Shown here piece after piece: positions 5,892 through 58,626 of a DNA stretch of 64,000 nucleotides. The notes under the pieces are model-generated. The model saw nothing but the letters and a program-made list of their open reading frames with translations, searched no databases and had not been told where the DNA came from. The position numbers and the translations under genes are program-made. The number at the start of each line of letters is the position of its first letter. Positions within the stretch are counted from its first letter, which is position 1. Source of the stretch: Octopus sinensis (Eukaryota); NCBI RefSeq assembly GCF_006345805.1, contig NC_043007.1, positions 75,826,001 to 75,890,000 on the forward strand. The letters are read 5' to 3'.

Positions 5892-6011
5892 CTCATTTAT
5901 TGAACAGCAGCACAACAAGGATGAAGAGACAATTGACAAAACGAATTCCACAACCATAGCAAATGCTGCAAGACTAAACAAAATATAGAGTCTTGTTGGA
6001 TTATGATAACG
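5892..6011 (-). CDS. Gene 1 exon, TM4 (RYHNPTRLYILFSLAAFAMVVEFVLSIVSSSLLCCCSINE)
   Basis: tcttctttttcag acceptor and GAG|gttagt donor; 120 bp, phase 0-0. The xEFxLSIxSSxxCC pattern is typical of CD20/MS4A-like TM4. Confidence 0.85.
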
Positions 6012-7306
6012 CTGAAAAAGAAGAAAAAGAATAGTTGAATGAGAAAGAAAGTGACTGATATGATTATCTTGTTACAAAGAAAGTTATTTTCCATGCTTTT
6101 CTAGTGGTATGGGAATTAATCTTGCAAAATTGATATTTTGCTCTTAAAACCATTATGTCAAAATGGTTTAAATGTAGTCTTTTATTGTTTTACTAGTTTC
6201 AGTAATTTCAGTGTGGTCATGCTGGAGTACCACCTTCAAGGATATAGCCGATTATATCAACCTGTCAACTTAAAGTACTTTCACTGGTTCTAATTCCATC
6301 AGCCTCAGATGGATGAAAAACAAAGTTGTTGATCTAAGGAAGGATTTGAACTCAAAACCTAAAGGAACATAACCAAATATCACTACCTGTTCTGTAAGAC
6401 ATTTTACCATTTCTACATCCAGCAACTTGTATATAAATTCATATAAATATTACAGTGTTTCTCAGAGAAAATTTCAGGAAAGTAAAGTTTTATAGAAATT
6501 ATTACAGAGAAGTTTATAAAATGCACACACATAATTCTAACTGTAGGATTTCTATTAGAGAAACTATTGAAAAAATGAAGTAATAATATCCAATTATTAA
6601 TGATTATATTACTGTTCTGCAACATCAAATGATTATCTATTCTGACTATTTCAGCCAAACAATAACACCATAATTCCAAATATCTAAAATTAATTTTTAA
6701 AGTACCCACATTGTCTTTTATGTTAGTTAATGTTAATGCTAATTGGTGTTTGATGAGTTTTGTAATTTAGTTTTTATTTTGTAAAACAGAATTTTGAATT
6801 ATTTAGTCACTGGTTAGCAACAGGTGATATGCACAGTCTGAACACAAATACAAGGCCCTGAAGACAAACAAAACCATAACAAAAAATTAATTAAATGAAA
6901 GAAAAAAAAAAAAATGGGTTTAACAATCTACAAATGCTTCCCATCAAAATTTTTTGAGAGAAGAGTGAGAGGTGGTCAAAAGTTCAATATTGGTATAAAA
7001 TCCTTCCATTACAAGGAAGATGTTAAAAGTTGGGGGAATCATGCCCTTTTTTGAAGAGAGTACAAACATGTGTAATGATTTCTACAAGGAATTAGAACCA
7101 AGTTCTTGAATCAATTCACTTAGAACTTTCAGTACTCACAACTATCAACATGATAGTAAATTTATAATTATGATGAAAAATTAATGTACAGATTAAAAAT
7201 ACCCGGCTTGTCACTGCAGGACTACACAACTTTCACTTTCTCTAATTGATAACACAGAGAGGAAAAATCTTTTATTCTTTTACTCTCCTTCTTCCTAGTC
7301 ACTTAC

Positions 7307-7342
7307 AGATGAACTTATCTACCCACAGAATGGATAGCAGAA
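7307..7342 (-). CDS. Candidate 36-nt gene 1 loop exon with in-frame TAG (FCYPFCG*ISSS)
   Basis: ttgcag acceptor and CT|gtaagt donor; phase 0-0, between the TM3 and TM4 exons. TAG at 7321-7319. Confidence 0.35.
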
Positions 7343-7443
7343 CTGCAATTAATTGGTGTACAATAATTCAAAGAAGACAATTTATTATAGTTCTTGAATT
7401 TAAGTATATAGCTCAGAAAACAGTTGGTTAAAAATACACTTAC

Positions 7444-7533
7444 AAGCCATAATGCATGGCTAGCAAAAGCACCAATTCCAGTGTGTGCAAAGACAGATGC
7501 TGACAAAATGGAAAGGATCATATAGGTAATTTT
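7444..7533 (-). CDS. Gene 1 exon, TM3 (KITYMILSILSASVFAHTGIGAFASHALWL)
   Basis: tttcgtttcag acceptor and CTT|gtaagt donor; 90 bp, phase 0-0, hydrophobic. Confidence 0.85.
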
Positions 7534-7746
7534 CTGAAACGAAATATTAAAGAGTTTTAGTTTTTTGTTTTCAACATATTTATGTGCATATGTATATAAA
7601 TATGCATGTGTGTGTGTATGTGTGTGTTTGTGTGTGTGTGTGTGTATGTGTGTGCATACAGACATAGATATTTGTATGTGACTGTGTGCATGTATGGTTG
7701 TGTGTATATGAGATTGTGCAGGGAGTGTTGACTAATTTTGTCAGTT

Positions 7747-7926
7747 CATACAATTGTCCATTTTGTGGGTATTTATGTTTGAATACTTTACATAAACACA
7801 CATCTGTCTCTCTTTCTCTCTTTCTCTGGGTGGATGTGTATACAGAGAGAAAGAGAGAAAGAGAGACAGATGTGTGTTTATGTAAAGTATTCAAACATAA
7901 ATACCCACAAAATGGACAATTGTATG
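7747..7926. repeat. Perfect inverted repeat, 81-bp arms with 18-nt spacer
   Basis: 7747-7827 is the exact reverse complement of 7846-7926. Confidence 0.95.
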
Positions 7927-55200: not shown

Positions 55201-55539
55201 TGCAAAAACAGATTGTATGTATATATTTATGTCATTATTCATATTTTTTTTCAAGATTTCTTGCTGATAGAGAAAGAGTCAGTTTCTATCCTAGATCCAA
55301 GACTCTTTCAGTGGAATTTCAGTAACATCATGTATGTATGTATGTATGTATGTATGTATGTATGTATGTATGTATGTATGTATGTATGTATGTATGTATG
55401 TATGTATGTATGTGTGCATGCATGTGTATGTTTGTATATATGTATGTATGTATGTATGTATGTGTGTATGTGTGTATGTATGTATGTATGTATGTATGTA
55501 GGTAGGTAGGAAGGTAGGTAGGTAGGCAGGCAGGCAGGC

Positions 55540-56050
55540 CAATCAATTGCTATGTTCAAGAAGTTGGCTTCTCTTAAGCAGTGTTCTACAGAGATTTGGA
55601 AACCTAGGTTGTTGAAGAAGCTATGAAGACTCTTAGAATTCATCTGTGAGTTGACAGTTGTTATTGTTGATAGCAAGGAACTATAAATCACCTTTAGAAC
55701 CTTGGAAGGTATCTTTCATGATATGCAAGAGGTATAGTCACTGATCTCTGCTGAATCGATTGCACACATGCTGATATCAAAATGTGTAGGGGAGTTTTTA
55801 TTGGACCAAAGGGTATCTTTATGTCTGACAAAAAGTTTGTCAAGCAAAAAAGAGCTTCTGTATTTCTTCATCTGAAGTCACAGGTATGGTTTATTCAAAG
55901 TTTATGGCTTTTATGAATAGCTGTTTTCTTATAGACAGGTAATAATTCAAGCAGTAGAAACTCTGTGGGGATAAGTTCAGAAGGTCAAAATTACTCAAAT
56001 ATATTTGCCACTCAAATCTTAAATAACCTTCAAGTAAAGTTTTATTAAAA
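55540..56050 (-). mobile_element. PLE RT fragment
   Basis: KAINF..SDEEI..HFDISM..DSAEIS..FNNLGFQISVE..ANFLNI, resembling 16168-16629. Confidence 0.6.
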
Positions 56051-56467
56051 AAGGTCCACTTTTTTTTAACAGATATCAGATAAACAGACAAACGTTTGTG
56101 TTAACTTAATGATGTTTGACGAATCTCATTATCTCTACACTTGCTTTCTTCTCTTAGCTAACATCTTACTACCTTCACTACTTTATCTCTTGATATTTAA
56201 CCACAAACATTGCTTTATCTATTTTTTTATCTTATCCTGTATTACTCATTTCCTATTGATTTTCATTTATTTTCCTTTCTAAGGGAACATTTTGCAGTTT
56301 ATAAGCTGAAGTAACTCCAAGTCATGTAACTCAATCTCTTGCAGTCTAAACAAGAACAATGTCATATATATGGTATCTTCAAATCTAAGATGACATAAAT
56401 GGTGCGACATTTGATGTGTCTTGCAATACAACAAACAATTATCAAATAAATAAAACACTGCACTTAC

Positions 56468-56560
56468 CTCTATTCCTGAACAGCGATAACAAAAATATAA
56501 AGAAGCAATTGCAAAAGTTAAATTCAGAAACAGTGAAAAAATTCCAACATAATGTATTGG
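56468..56560 (-). CDS. Gene 2 exon, TM4 (PIHYVGIFSLFLNLTFAIASLYFCYRCSGIE)
   Basis: tttcttttcttttgcag acceptor and GAG|gtaagt donor; 93 bp, phase 0-0. Flanks are collinear with those of 5892-6011. Confidence 0.85.
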
Positions 56561-58545
56561 CTGCAAAAGAAAAGAAACATTTGAAAGAGAAAGAAAGTGA
56601 TAGAAATAACATTGCCAAAAAGAAGTATTATTCATACTTTTCGAGTAGTCATCATCGTCATCATCATCATTTAGCATCCGCTTTCCATGCTAGCATGGGT
56701 TGGACGGTTCAACTGGGGTCTGGGAAACCAGATGGCTGCACCAGGCCCAGTCTGATCTGGCAATGTTTCTACGGCTGGATGCCCTTCTTATGCCAACCAC
56801 TCTGTGAGTGTAGTGGGTGCTTTTTACGTGCCAGATGGGGCTGGCAAATGGCCACGGTCGGATGGTGCTTTTTAAAGCTGATGTTTTACTTTTAAAGATT
56901 TCTGTGTAGTGTTAAAATAGCTTTAATGCAGTCTTTTACTGTTTTACTAGTTTCAGTAATTTGAATGTGGCATTGCTGGGGTACCACCTTCTAAGATATA
57001 GCCGATTATATTAACCTAAATTAATTTTACTGATTCTAATTTCATCAGCCTCAGATGGATGAAAAATAAAGTTGCTGACCGAAGGAAGGATTTGAACTCA
57101 GAACCTAAAAGAATATAACCAATTTACCACAACCTGTTCTGTAAGACATTTTACCATTTCTACACCCAGCAACTTGTACATTAATTTATATGAATATCAC
57201 TGTATTTTTCAGGAAATAAAATTTCTATAGAAATTACTATAGAGAAGTTAATAAAATGCATACACATAATTCTAACTGTAGGATTTCTATTAGAGAAACT
57301 ATTGAAAAAATGAAGAAATAATATCCAATTATTAATGATTCAATTATTGTTCTGCAGCATCAAATGATTATCTATTCTGACTATTTCAGCCAAACAATAA
57401 CACCATAATTCCAAATATCTAAATTTAATTTTTAAAGTATCCACATTGTCTTTTATGTTAGTTAATGTTAATGCTAATTGGTGTTTGATGAATTTTGTAA
57501 TTTAGTTTTTATTTTGTAAAACAGAATTTTGAATTATTTAGTGTCTGTCCAACAACAGATACTATGAATAAATGGTTTGTTTCTTCACTCCCAGCCTGAG
57601 CACAAGTACAAAGCACCTGATGATAATCACGAAGGAAACCATCCCTCAAAATTTAACTGAATTAAAGAAGATACAAAAAGTTTTTACGAAAACCAAAAAT
57701 TAGTTTAACAATCTATAAATGTTTTCCATCAATAAAAGTCAATAATTTAAAATAATTTCATACAATCACAACTTTGATTAATAATTTCTGATCTAGATAT
57801 TTTTAATCTGTACATTAATTGTTCATCACAGTTATAAATTTATTATCATGTTTATTATAGTTGTGAGTACTGTAAGTTCCAAAGGAATTGATTTCAGAAC
57901 TTGTTTCCAATTTCTTGGAGAAATCCTTCCACATGTTTGTAATGCTCTTCAAGAAAGGGCATGATTCCCAGTCTCTACCACCATCCTTGCAAAAGTAGTA
58001 TTTCATGTCAACATAGATATTCTGGACTACCTCATTTTCTCTTTGTTCTCAAAAACCAAAAATTGTAGGTTTGTCTCAAAGACCACATAGAACTACTGTT
58101 TTAACTATGTAACCTGTGCCGGTGGCACGTAAAAAGCATCCGCTACACTCATGGAGTGGTTGGCATTAGGAAGGGCATCCAGCTGTAGAAACACTGCCAG
58201 ATCAGTCTGGGTCTGGCGCAGCCTTCTGACTTCCCAGACCCCAATTGAACCGTCCAACCCATGCTAGCATGGAAAACGGATGATGATGATGATGATGATG
58301 ATGATGATGATGAACCCATTTTTACTTGTTAAAAATGATATGTGCAAAATAGCTTCATCAAAGAAAAGCTGCTTTTCCAAAACACAAATTTATTTAGTAG
58401 AAAAAGTCAATTATTCACATGCTTTCAATTTAAGCTGACAGTAAGCAGTTTTTGTTCTGATTTTTTATATCATAAAAATAAAAGAGTTAATTTTCATTGT
58501 TAAAGGAAAGTATCAACAAAATGATTCAGGTAAGAATATACTTAC

Positions 58546-58626
58546 TTCCTTACAAATAAATAGAAGGGTTACAAAACATGCAGCCATAATTCCTAACAAA
58601 ATATTGGAAACAAGATAGATTTTTCT
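58546..58626 (-). CDS. Gene 2 exon, TM3 (RKIYLVSNILLGIMAACFVTLLFICKE)
   Basis: Poly-T plus cag acceptor and GAA|gtaagt donor; 81 bp, phase 0-0. Parallels KITYMILSIL of gene 1. Confidence 0.85.

Follow-up and report, generated by a model that had tools for sequence, protein, structure and literature searches.

The window analysed here (the whole stretch of 64,000 nucleotides, positions 75,826,001–75,890,000 of Octopus sinensis chromosome CM016869.1) had been read from its letters as carrying a tandem pair of divergent CD20/MS4A-like genes, and it raises the question of whether these genes are real, whether they belong to CD20/MS4A, and what their products may do. Both genes proved real and lie on the minus strand, and both are paralogues inside a larger tandem family; the window contains all of gene 1 except its last exon, together with the final three exons of gene 2.

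Two minus-strand gene models

Gene 1 exon 1 (13860–13654; 207 nt; donor GTAAGT; family HMM E = 5e-23) begins with an ATG at 13860, encodes TM1 with the conserved His17, the TM1–TM2 loop, and the first half of TM2, and ends in phase 0 with ...ASLW directly before GTAAGT. The second half of TM2 and the TM2–TM3 loop are encoded by exon 2 (9836–9765; 72 nt, 24 aa; donor GTAAAT; E = 3.2e-5), TM3 (KITYMILSILSASVF...) by exon 3 (7533–7444; 90 nt, 30 aa; donor GTAAGT; E = 1.8e-11), and a short loop, TM4 with the conserved Glu145, and the cysteine cluster SSSLLCCCS by exon 4 (6011–5892; 120 nt, 40 aa; donor GTTAGT; E = 6e-18). These three exons are also in phase 0; each acceptor has a pyrimidine tract followed by AG, and all introns are GT-AG. 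Splicing gives 163 aa that match, at 100% identity, residues 1–163 of a RefSeq protein of 214 aa, XP_029642555.1 ([quoted passage not shown]), and exact exon mapping of this protein onto the genomic locus yielded identical junctions. The four phase-compatible exons of the sequence-only reading were thus correct, but its 163 aa are not the whole protein, as a fifth exon had been missed; this exon, encoding a 51-aa tail, maps on the same strand to window coordinates −881 to −1033, approximately 0.9 kb before the window start. The GTTAGT donor of exon 4 joins to it, and the stop that read-through of exon 4 would reach goes unused. Gene 1 is not new as a gene, RefSeq already carrying it as the uncharacterised locus LOC115217098. 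The proposed four-TM architecture is confirmed by four hydrophobic segments and four predicted helices; AlphaFold models these as four long helices, and over residues 1–160 the pLDDT is mostly 70–93, with a single block at 52. On our reading of the sequence, gene 1 has positive charges on both membrane sides, so the positive-inside rule does not fix its topology.

The three gene 2 exons in the window are exons 3 to 5 of a five-exon gene. Exon 3 (58626–58546, minus strand; 27 aa) encodes a divergent TM3 (RKIYLVSNILLGIMAACFVTLLFICKE), and exon 4 (56560–56468, minus strand; 31 aa) a divergent TM4 with 53% identity to TM4 of the paralogue P0006; both are in phase 0 with GT-AG introns. Exon 5 (49859–49002, minus strand) encodes a 285-aa, presumably cytoplasmic tail (KNAVTTQGP...) that ends with a TAG stop at 49004–49002, contains 14 PPxY motifs, and matches the tail of another family member, P0004 (E = 6e-13). 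The PPxY array is generated by a tandem repeat at 49054–49765 (96-nt unit encoding 32 aa, 7.4 copies, 96% matches), and the tail is two units longer in O. sinensis than in O. vulgaris (285 vs. 221 aa). The three exons that had been proposed hold, as the O. vulgaris model CAI9729914.1 (P0003; 95% identity) has the same two junctions. In that species, exon 1 precedes exon 3 by 22 kb and exon 2 precedes it by 10.7 kb; this spacing would place exons 1 and 2 of O. sinensis approximately 16.3 and 5.1 kb past window position 64000. When remodelled with five exons (359 aa), O. vulgaris gene 2 aligns with the family HMM over its whole length (E = 2.8e-21).

A fast-evolving cephalopod tandem family

Genes 1 and 2 gave no direct BLAST match to each other; their paralogy follows from the matches of both to the family HMM and to the intermediate P0004, which matches gene 1 exons 1, 3, and 4 (E = 2e-4 to 2e-6) as well as the gene 2 tail. 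The family profile finds 12 Octopus proteins, and O. sinensis has at least six named loci plus gene 2 (i.e., at least seven genes), four of these loci being placed at 75.595–76.010 Mb of CM016869.1 (approximately 415 kb). The accession order in O. vulgaris (CAI9729910 ... 14, 15/16 ... 23) suggests the same gene order in that species. A lineage-expanded cluster had been predicted; the tandem family is present, but with approximately seven genes the expansion is modest.

Both genes are members of a multigene family in cephalopods whose products are small (about 175–360 aa), have four TM helices, and are encoded by five exons that are all in phase 0. The N-terminal tail is almost absent (approximately 8 residues), and the predicted loops comprise 10–25 residues between TM1 and TM2 and 7–10 between TM3 and TM4. 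Conserved residues include H17 in TM1, E145 in TM4, S152–S154, and C157–C159; the TM1 His is invariant and the TM4 Glu nearly so among the cephalopod members, with the Glu invariant in the wider mollusc alignment. TM4 ends in a juxtamembrane S-S-S-I-C-C-C-C-S cluster, followed by a variable, proline-rich C-terminal tail. A PPxY motif occurs once or twice in 11 of the 19 cephalopod members, in addition to the 14 copies in gene 2; gene 1 contains no strict PPxY.

The rapid evolution that the sequence-only reading noted for mammalian MS4As is evident here as well, since the family proteins diverge more than the surrounding introns: orthologues (O. sinensis or O. vulgaris vs. O. bimaculoides) are 63–74% identical across the family, and introns approximately 92%. 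For gene 1, comparison of O. sinensis with O. bimaculoides yielded dN = 0.170 and dS = 0.144 (dN/dS = 1.18), and the nonsynonymous excess over the intron mismatch rate (0.075) had a binomial p of 5e-9. Read from these two sequences, the substitutions are distributed across TM1, TM2, and the TM2–TM3 loop.

An indirect link to CD20/MS4A

The lack of a CD20-like profile hit had been named beforehand as an outcome that would speak against CD20-like membership, and for the two proteins themselves this is the outcome: neither gene 1 nor the gene 2 fragment matched Pfam CD20, even at E ≤ 10. Among 10 octopus paralogues, one matched CD20 (E = 9e-4, below threshold) and none reached the threshold, while single members showed scattered weak matches to Tetraspanin, DUF1218, and DUF981 at similar E values. 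A PDB sequence search yielded no match to CD20 or FcεRIβ, and hhalign of the octopus family against vertebrate MS4A yielded no direct signal; the TM4 Glu of the family aligns with that of CD20 in this comparison, with a non-significant score. Foldseek returned nothing at E ≤ 1e-3, and its joint-best matches (E = 0.074) were synaptogyrin (a MARVEL protein) and FcεRIβ; at this E value and a TM-score of 0.42, the MARVEL match does not discriminate.

An exhaustive family-profile search identified 39 matches at E ≤ 1e-3 among 1.84 billion proteins, 35 of which were scanned with Pfam, the other four being octopus members already known. CD20 was matched by 13 of these 35 relatives, and any other Pfam family by at most three. 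Seven relatives pass the CD20 gathering score (27.9 bits) with 31.7–43.8 bits; the family profile finds these homologues at E = 8e-12 to 4e-5, and the named ones are from bivalves or gastropods. By hhalign, the octopus family aligns with this CD20-passing mollusc group over 159 columns that include all four TMs (probability 99.0, E = 3.3e-18), and the mollusc group in turn aligns with a set made up of CD20 from human and FcεRIβ from human and mouse (probability 86, E = 5.2e-6). A member from the scallop Pecten maximus (P0049), which has a precomputed Pfam CD20 match, is encoded by five phase-0 exons with breaks at places homologous to those of the octopus family: exon 1 ends with ...WCGLW, exon 2 encodes 22 aa, exon 3 starts from K, and exon 4 closes right after CCCCS. 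The W-ending phase-0 first exon, which the sequence-only reading had taken as a CD20/MS4A-like layout, is thus common to a scallop gene with a CD20 domain.

These comparisons support placing the family as a strongly diverged cephalopod branch of the molluscan CD20-like (PF04103) group, with a link to vertebrate MS4A, CD20, and FcεRIβ that runs only through the bivalve and gastropod intermediates. “CD20-like” here denotes transitive homology only, because the octopus members miss the threshold that the mollusc intermediates pass; the proposed membership therefore holds as an indirect link, but not as direct similarity to vertebrate CD20 or FcεRIβ. Like PF04103 members (MS4A1/CD20, MS4A2/FcεRIβ, other MS4As, and TMEM176A/B), the octopus proteins are small, have four TM helices, evolve rapidly, and are encoded in tandem clusters. 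They differ in giving neither a profile nor a pairwise match directly, in having an N-terminal tail of approximately 8 residues (the TM1 motif starts near residue 50–60 in the CD20 and FcεRIβ sequences compared), in a TM3–TM4 loop far shorter than that of CD20, in a CCCC juxtamembrane cluster with a proline-rich or PPxY tail where FcεRIβ has an ITAM-type tail, and in the erosion of the hallmarks LGAxQI and PxWGG to TITGAxH and SLW. With the “uncharacterized” molluscan CD20-domain proteins (e.g., P. maximus XP_033758699.1 and Saccostrea echinata XP_061169967.1) they share homology across the four TMs, the placement and phase of all four introns (scallop gene), a TM4 end of the form E..AI.S(A/S)S.CCCC(S/A), and a proline-rich tail; those proteins, however, have an N-terminal tail of their own (20–65 residues) with a conserved FP(F/Y)S motif, retain PxWCGxW, mostly have a conserved SYxRLKxxALP end, and lack strict PPxY in seven of eight cases.

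Putative function and alternative readings

Taken as one whole, the explanation that we consider probable is that these proteins are diverged CD20-like family members with an accessory or adaptor role. Several MS4A proteins regulate other proteins of the cell surface (their trafficking, turnover, or signalling), and PPxY is an established ligand of WW domains (e.g., in Nedd4-type ubiquitin ligases). By analogy, the family proteins are most likely palmitoylated tetraspan adaptor subunits rather than stand-alone ligand receptors; this role is favoured by the presence of PPxY in more than half of the cephalopod members and its multiplication in gene 2. Both termini would be cytosolic, as in CD20-like proteins, palmitoylation of the Cys cluster would tether the beginning of the tail to the membrane, the buried polar His/Glu pair may allow the proteins to oligomerise or to pair with other membrane proteins, and the tail would recruit cytosolic factors; as accessory subunits, the proteins could thereby control how other surface proteins traffic, signal, or are turned over. 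Since gene 1 contains no strict PPxY, the tail part of this mechanism would apply mainly to gene 2 and other paralogues. NDFIP1/2 and LAPTM4/5, PPxY adaptors of Nedd4-type ligases, offer a functional analogy in being multi-pass proteins with cytosolic PPxY; they differ in having no sequence relationship to the family in Pfam scans, and WW-domain binding by the octopus proteins is putative.

It is improbable that the cluster instead encodes chemosensory or immune ligand-binding surface receptors analogous to mammalian MS4A chemoreceptors, as the sequence-only reading had suggested: the tandem arrangement, the protein divergence in excess of introns, and a variable, Tyr-rich TM1–TM2 loop would fit, but the predicted exposed loops are tiny, gene 1 substitutions are not concentrated in the presumed outer loop, and the copy number is small. 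Ligand specificity of MS4A chemoreceptors is reportedly located in the TM3–TM4 loop, which has just 7–10 residues in the octopus family. Slighter still is the chance of ion-conducting oligomers in which the buried His and Glu form the lining of a pore; ion conduction has been suggested for TMEM176 and, on one occasion, for CD20, and the conservation of both residues is consistent with it, but the idea derives from just two residues, and no channel family was matched in Pfam scans or Foldseek. We also regard it as unlikely, though less so, that the family is an independent molluscan four-helix or MARVEL-type group unrelated to CD20/MS4A, with a likeness due to composition or convergence. The failure of the direct searches (Pfam CD20, PDB, and hhalign), the weak matches to other Pfam families, and two resemblances to MARVEL tetraspans such as synaptogyrin, MAL, and CMTM, which are likewise small four-helix membrane bundles (the joint-best Foldseek match and the automatic UniRef label of P0006, “MARVEL domain-containing protein”), point in this direction, and Zuccolo et al. 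2010 (PMC2826416) concluded for other invertebrate candidates that similarities to MS4A are limited to TM segments and may be convergent. However, the seven mollusc proteins that exceed the curated CD20 threshold are independent homologues and do so in a single register (profile positions 1 to approximately 76–95), CD20 is the only Pfam family matching more than three of the 35 relatives, Pfam MARVEL is absent among the matches listed for the 45 scanned proteins of the family and its relatives, and the alignment of the mollusc group with CD20/FcεRIβ falls at the hallmark motifs LGAxQI and PxWxG...SG.

The closest competitor, to which we give somewhat less than an even chance, concerns gene 2, which may be a decaying or non-functional duplicate (a pseudogene or transcribed relic) whose open tail would reflect only a young 96-nt tandem repeat. 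Gene 2 is changed at invariant or nearly invariant sites (TM4 Glu to Asn, SSS to ASL, and CCCC degraded to CYRC), and in O. vulgaris SLW has become LLS and an Arg/Lys lies inside the TM1 motif; the family HMM misses its TM3 exon and finds its TM4 exon only at E = 0.022. RefSeq holds no O. sinensis protein for this gene, no O. bimaculoides protein was found either, and the O. vulgaris model has odd 5′ exons, one resembling a repeated element. At 45717–45667, 3.3 kb downstream, there is a relic of the tail repeat that contains an in-frame stop, and repeat number differs between O. sinensis and O. vulgaris, which are approximately 99% identical here. Against decay, the frames are open, in phase 0, and joined by canonical GT-AG introns in the five exons of O. 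vulgaris and the window's three in O. sinensis, and the 285-aa tail is open with its 14 PPxY motifs intact; the two species are too close (99–99.75% identity in non-coding DNA) for constraint on gene 2 to be proved either way. Decay of gene 2 would be compatible with a functional gene 1.

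Structure of the two genes

The four exons that the sequence-only reading had proposed for gene 1 on the minus strand (13860–13654, 9836–9765, 7533–7444, and 6011–5892) were reproduced exactly; all have lengths divisible by three, GT donors, and polypyrimidine-AG acceptors. When spliced, these exons encode 163 aa identical to residues 1–163 of XP_029642555.1, and exact genomic mapping of this protein yielded identical junctions. Gene 1 is real and was already known in RefSeq as “uncharacterized protein LOC115217098 isoform X1”. The proposed model was one exon short: a 51-aa tail exon is located approximately 0.9 kb before window position 1, and the GTTAGT following exon 4 is a donor in use. 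The two gene 1 isoforms, X1 (P0001) and X2 (P0064), differ solely at the exon 4/5 junction (INEGTSVWV vs. INEQNVWV; 24742 region of the gene 1 locus, L001), which points to a putative alternative acceptor at exon 5, outside the window. A 19-nt minisatellite located within intron 4 (4587–5217; 33 copies with a 95-nt super-period) is open in all three minus-strand frames, resulting in a spurious 227-aa ORF (STPLFTVNTSFHRQHLFSL repeats); it was ruled out as the tail exon of gene 1, as RefSeq exon 5 is located elsewhere. The proposal that gene 1 encodes four transmembrane (TM) helices held by both hydropathy and an AlphaFold model, with Kyte-Doolittle segments at residues 12–33, 54–83, 98–117, and 129–162 and modeled helices at residues 2–42, 52–82, 87–126, and 131–165. 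The mean pLDDT of the model was 69.9; ten-residue blocks over residues 1–160 were mostly between 70 and 93, with one at 52.

The three exons proposed for gene 2 (exons 3–5; 58626–58546, 56560–56468, and 49859–49002, minus strand) are all in phase 0 with GT-AG sites, and both junctions are used by the O. vulgaris model CAI9729914.1. The last exon encodes a 285-aa tail derived from a 96-nt tandem repeat (7.4 copies) and contains 14 PPxY motifs. No direct match was found between gene 2 and gene 1; an O. vulgaris paralogue (P0004) bridges them, as it matches the gene 1 exons in the window with its TM regions (E 2e-6 to 8e-4) and the tail of gene 2 with its own tail (E 6e-13). Two extra upstream exons with canonical sites were identified at the O. 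vulgaris gene 2 locus (OX597824.1; L005 3957–4124, MIVGFMYTRMRKTGIFH...LLS followed by GTAAGT, and L005 15288–15359, IIAIGIVGIITGETANPERTTIML followed by GTAAAT), and the five-exon O. vulgaris reconstruction (359 aa) presented an end-to-end match to the family HMM (E 2.8e-21). By synteny, O. sinensis exons 2 and 1 would be located approximately 5.1 and 16.3 kb past the window end; neither was detected by tblastn or the family HMM in 58627–64000. Searches of the whole window, with 22 family proteins as tblastn queries and the family HMM applied to 3160 six-frame segments, recovered a single tail relic besides the seven exons already described, with no gene 2 exons 1–2 and no further paralogues. 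The N-terminal part of CAI9729914.1 (RNLVAHNKQKIREYLNSKS...) has a second copy, 57–59% identical, downstream of the gene in both species (window 43585–43692, minus strand; 17615–17743 and 38977–39084 of the O. vulgaris locus, L005); because of this second copy, the 5′ exon of the public model looks repeat-derived. The 5′ end of that model is probably in error, and the canonical five-exon reconstruction can take its place.

Gene 2 is markedly degenerate at positions that are invariant in the family (TM4 Glu to Asn, SSS to ASL, and CCCC to CYRC), and we found no product of it among O. sinensis protein records; we regard a working gene and a decaying copy as about equally probable. A test of constraint between O. 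sinensis and O. vulgaris has no power here, since non-coding DNA around gene 2 is 99–99.75% identical between the two species. At 285 aa (window 49002–49859), the gene 2 tail of O. sinensis exceeds that of O. vulgaris (221 aa; L005 34799–35464) by two 32-aa units, although the flanking DNA is nearly identical in the two species; copy number in the PPxY array changes rapidly. A relic of the tail repeat with an in-frame stop (YTAGAEMLP*YNASPPG; 45667–45717, minus strand) is located 3.3 kb downstream of the stop codon and looks like a remnant of an older or duplicated tail exon.

The octopus family and its rate of evolution

A three-member profile retrieved 12 Octopus proteins, and an exhaustive profile search of 1.84 billion representatives yielded just 39 matches at E ≤ 1e-3. 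All mapped members of this family of small four-TM proteins share a five-exon, all-phase-0 structure. Conserved features run from an extreme N-terminal M-x-V-G-F-x-Y through T-I-T-G-A-x-H (TM1), S-L-W (within TM2, at the boundary of exon 1), and K-I-x-Y-M-x-L-x-I-L-S-A (TM3) to (V/L)-E-F-V-L-A-I-V-S-S-S-I-C-C-C-C-S, with which TM4 ends. The lineage-expanded cluster suggested by the sequence-only reading stood in part: same-strand tandem paralogues do belong to a larger family, with four O. sinensis loci placed on one chromosome at 75.595–76.010 Mb, but the expansion is modest. At least six named O. sinensis loci were found (LOC115217098, 115217703, 115217350, 115216970, 115216986, and 115216985, the last known solely from how an Argonauta protein is named), gene 2 being the seventh; three O. 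bimaculoides loci (LOC106870694, LOC106870695, and LOC106870696) carry consecutive numbers. Some relatives are encoded as full-length proteins on Logan contigs of merely 1.0–1.2 kb, as compared to >10 kb for octopus family genes, and these contigs presumably represent spliced transcripts. One O. vulgaris protein (P0005; 268 aa) contains the exon 2–4 block (IIAVGILGI...CCCCSGTR) twice in tandem, which may reflect a duplication of the exon block or else an artefact of assembly or annotation. The automatic UniRef names of P0006 (“MARVEL domain-containing protein”) and of the 96-aa fragment P0019 ([quoted passage not shown]) are at odds with each other and with the present evidence.

Between O. 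sinensis and O. bimaculoides, gene 1 presented a dN of 0.170 and a dS of 0.144 (Nei-Gojobori; dN/dS 1.18). Colinear intron blocks of gene 1 differ at 7.5% of aligned sites and exons 1, 2, and 5 at 16–28%; the nonsynonymous excess over the intron rate has a binomial p of 5e-9, and protein-level change in the cephalopod branch is approximately twice that of neighboring introns. With orthologues taken as best-matching cross-species pairs, O. sinensis or O. vulgaris proteins are only 63–74% identical to those of O. bimaculoides across the family. By reading, substitutions between the two gene 1 orthologues are found in TM1, the TM1–TM2 loop, TM2, and the TM2–TM3 loop; TM3 and TM4 are conserved. 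Gene conversion from paralogues would offer another source for the excess exon divergence; however, exon identities to three sampled O. sinensis paralogues were 54–80%, and a single 87% exon identity came from a gapped 72-nt alignment between genes whose protein sequences are clearly unlike, so conversion found no support among these three. The excess divergence of the family fits positive selection. Fast protein change in a tandem cluster is typical of immune, reproductive, or sensory conflict genes.

Relationship to CD20-like proteins

The expected profile match was not obtained: neither gene 1 nor the gene 2 fragment matched Pfam CD20 (PF04103; gathering score 27.9 bits) at E ≤ 10. One of ten octopus paralogues presented a CD20 match (E 9.3e-4) that fell below the threshold and was comparable to scattered matches to Tetraspanin, DUF1218, and DUF981 in the same set of paralogues; none has CD20 on its precomputed record. 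Neither CD20 nor FcεRIβ was recovered from PDB sequences with 3- and 10-sequence octopus family profiles, and mollusc profiles reached these proteins at sub-significant levels (E 0.24–4). Direct hhalign comparison of the octopus family alignment gave E 0.045 against CD20, in TM4 only, and E 0.25 against CD20 plus FcεRIβ. No PDB structure matched the AlphaFold model at E ≤ 1e-3 in Foldseek; FcεRIβ chains ranked 2, 8, 17, and 28 (E 0.07–0.6; TM-score 0.28–0.45) and did not stand out from synaptogyrin or designed helical bundles, a result without power to separate MS4A, MARVEL, tetraspanin, and designed bundles. In the octopus proteins, the hallmark motifs have shrunk to TITGAxHLxLG and SLW..VGIxG, and their direct alignment to CD20/FcεRIβ is not significant. 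Two other four-TM families were rejected. MARVEL (PF01284) is absent both from the families listed for ten octopus members (E ≤ 10) and from the 25 families listed for 35 relatives (E ≤ 1); its one trace is the non-significant fold match to synaptogyrin. Tetraspanin (PF00335), a family marked by a large second extracellular loop with a CCG motif, presented a weak match in two of ten members (E 0.002), and the TM3–TM4 loop of the octopus proteins is cysteine-free and only 7–10 residues long.

Further out (E 8e-12 to 4e-5), the octopus profile matched scallop, mussel, oyster, and gastropod proteins labeled “uncharacterized”. Pfam CD20 matched 13 of the 35 relatives scanned, as compared to three or fewer for every other listed family; seven of these relatives (P0023, P0025, P0029, P0031, P0033, P0037, and P0038) exceeded 27.9 bits (31.7–43.8 bits), with alignments that always run from profile position 1–2 through TM3. 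Profile-profile alignment linked the octopus family to this bivalve/gastropod group over 159 columns and all four helices (hhalign probability 99.0, E 3.3e-18), and, on LGAxQI and PxWxG...SG, linked the mollusc group to human CD20 aligned with FcεRIβ from both human and mouse (probability 86, E 5.2e-6); the CD20 and FcεRIβ sequences were checked against PDB entries. The CD20 hallmarks (TM1 LGAxQI..G and TM2 PxWGG..(I/F)xSG) can be seen in the bivalve/gastropod relatives aligned to CD20/FcεRIβ. In a comparison of intron positions among molluscan genes, a Pecten maximus gene for which a Pfam CD20 match is precomputed has five phase-0 exons and the same four intron positions as octopus (a break after ...PIWCGLW, a 22-aa exon 2, a K-initial exon 3, and an exon 4 end a few residues past CCCCS). 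Gene structure is independent evidence for the CD20-like link.

The CD20-like assignment of the sequence-only reading therefore survives through transitive homology, via threshold-passing molluscs and shared introns, and not through a direct match. We conclude that the octopus genes probably belong to a molluscan CD20-like group, as its diverged cephalopod branch; homology at the superfamily level is very likely, and on sequence grounds these genes fall outside the vertebrate MS4A clade. The profile search, the seven threshold-passing Pfam matches, the 99% profile-profile link, and the four common introns together argue for a CD20-like lineage older than vertebrates and with a molluscan branch, whose cephalopod members drifted out of reach of the CD20 family model. 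The sole dedicated phylogenetic study found in our literature search (Zuccolo et al. 2010; PMC2826416) concluded that MS4A-like genes are absent from invertebrates; this view is older than the mollusc genomes used here, and the authors' caution on similarity restricted to TM regions continues to hold for the final step of the homology chain. Literature searches found nothing relevant on MS4A/CD20-like genes in octopus or molluscs, and no exon-phase data for vertebrate MS4A genes.

Possible function and genomic surroundings

The octopus genes are a diverged variant of a known superfamily, and the cephalopod branch is set apart by its protein anatomy (a buried His/Glu pair, the CCCC cluster, and PPxY tails); its genes sit in a tandem cluster. 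Cys clusters next to the membrane are classic sites of S-acylation, and WW domains bind PPxY; S-acylation of the CCCC cluster and binding of WW domains by the tail would each need a cytosolic C-terminus, and with four helices the N-terminus would then be cytosolic too, as in CD20. From homology, the Cys cluster, and the PPxY tail, we infer that both termini are probably cytosolic; by reading, the charge distribution in gene 1 is ambiguous as to topology. The buried His/Glu pair may mediate helix-helix association, with itself or with partners, and the exposed loops are very small. MS4A proteins act as accessory subunits. Given these accessory roles, the Cys cluster, the PPxY tail, the His/Glu pair, and the tiny loops, the most economical reading is that of a putative palmitoylated tetraspan adaptor that would tune how other membrane proteins are trafficked or turned over, with gene 2 as an extreme PPxY-multivalent form. 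A cytosolic PPxY feature, as in PPxY adaptors of Nedd4-type ligases, is predicted from sequence for gene 2 and for 11 of 19 cephalopod members (one or two motifs each), but not for gene 1, which has none.

The receptor function proposed by the sequence-only reading is unsupported, and our findings provide no evidence for a new chemoreceptor class; a stand-alone chemoreceptor is quite improbable and a channel still less probable. The cluster might instead encode positively selected surface recognition subunits, with paralogues diversifying to track ligands or pathogens and the 14-fold PPxY tail of gene 2 coupling recognition to ubiquitin-dependent internalisation, although we consider this unlikely; if true, the octopod cluster would be an invertebrate counterpart of the MS4A chemoreceptor/immunoreceptor system and would overturn the published view of MS4A-like genes as restricted to jawed vertebrates. 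For expression mapping and trafficking assays in octopus, members of the family offer inexpensive and well-defined candidates.

The first 23,860 bases of the window match O. sinensis chromosome CM016869.1 with 100% identity, which sets the window at 75,826,001–75,890,000. The window is AT-rich and microsatellite-laden, with numerous microsatellites between gene 1 and gene 2; we saw no other host gene near the two genes or in the interval that separates them, and the 10 kb upstream of gene 1 contain no called gene. On the plus strand, we identified LINE endonuclease and reverse-transcriptase fragments (21228–23530; Exo_endo_phos_2, E 6e-12; RVT_1, E 2e-13) and a mariner-type transposase fragment (26491–27024; Transposase_1, E 7e-22). 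An intact 468-aa ORF (46550–47956, plus strand), located opposite and 1 kb from the gene 2 stop, is Glu/Lys-rich with one CCHC zinc knuckle (CLCGTGGHIKEEC) and no Pfam match; it may represent a gag-like retroelement or a domesticated gene. A short interspersed element that reads (F/V)(H/F)xSMGWTV..GSGKP in translation is present on both strands (about 8900–9100, 10300–10480, 24950–25050, 56677–56727, 59611–59733, and 61988–62100) and is the source of many small ORFs.
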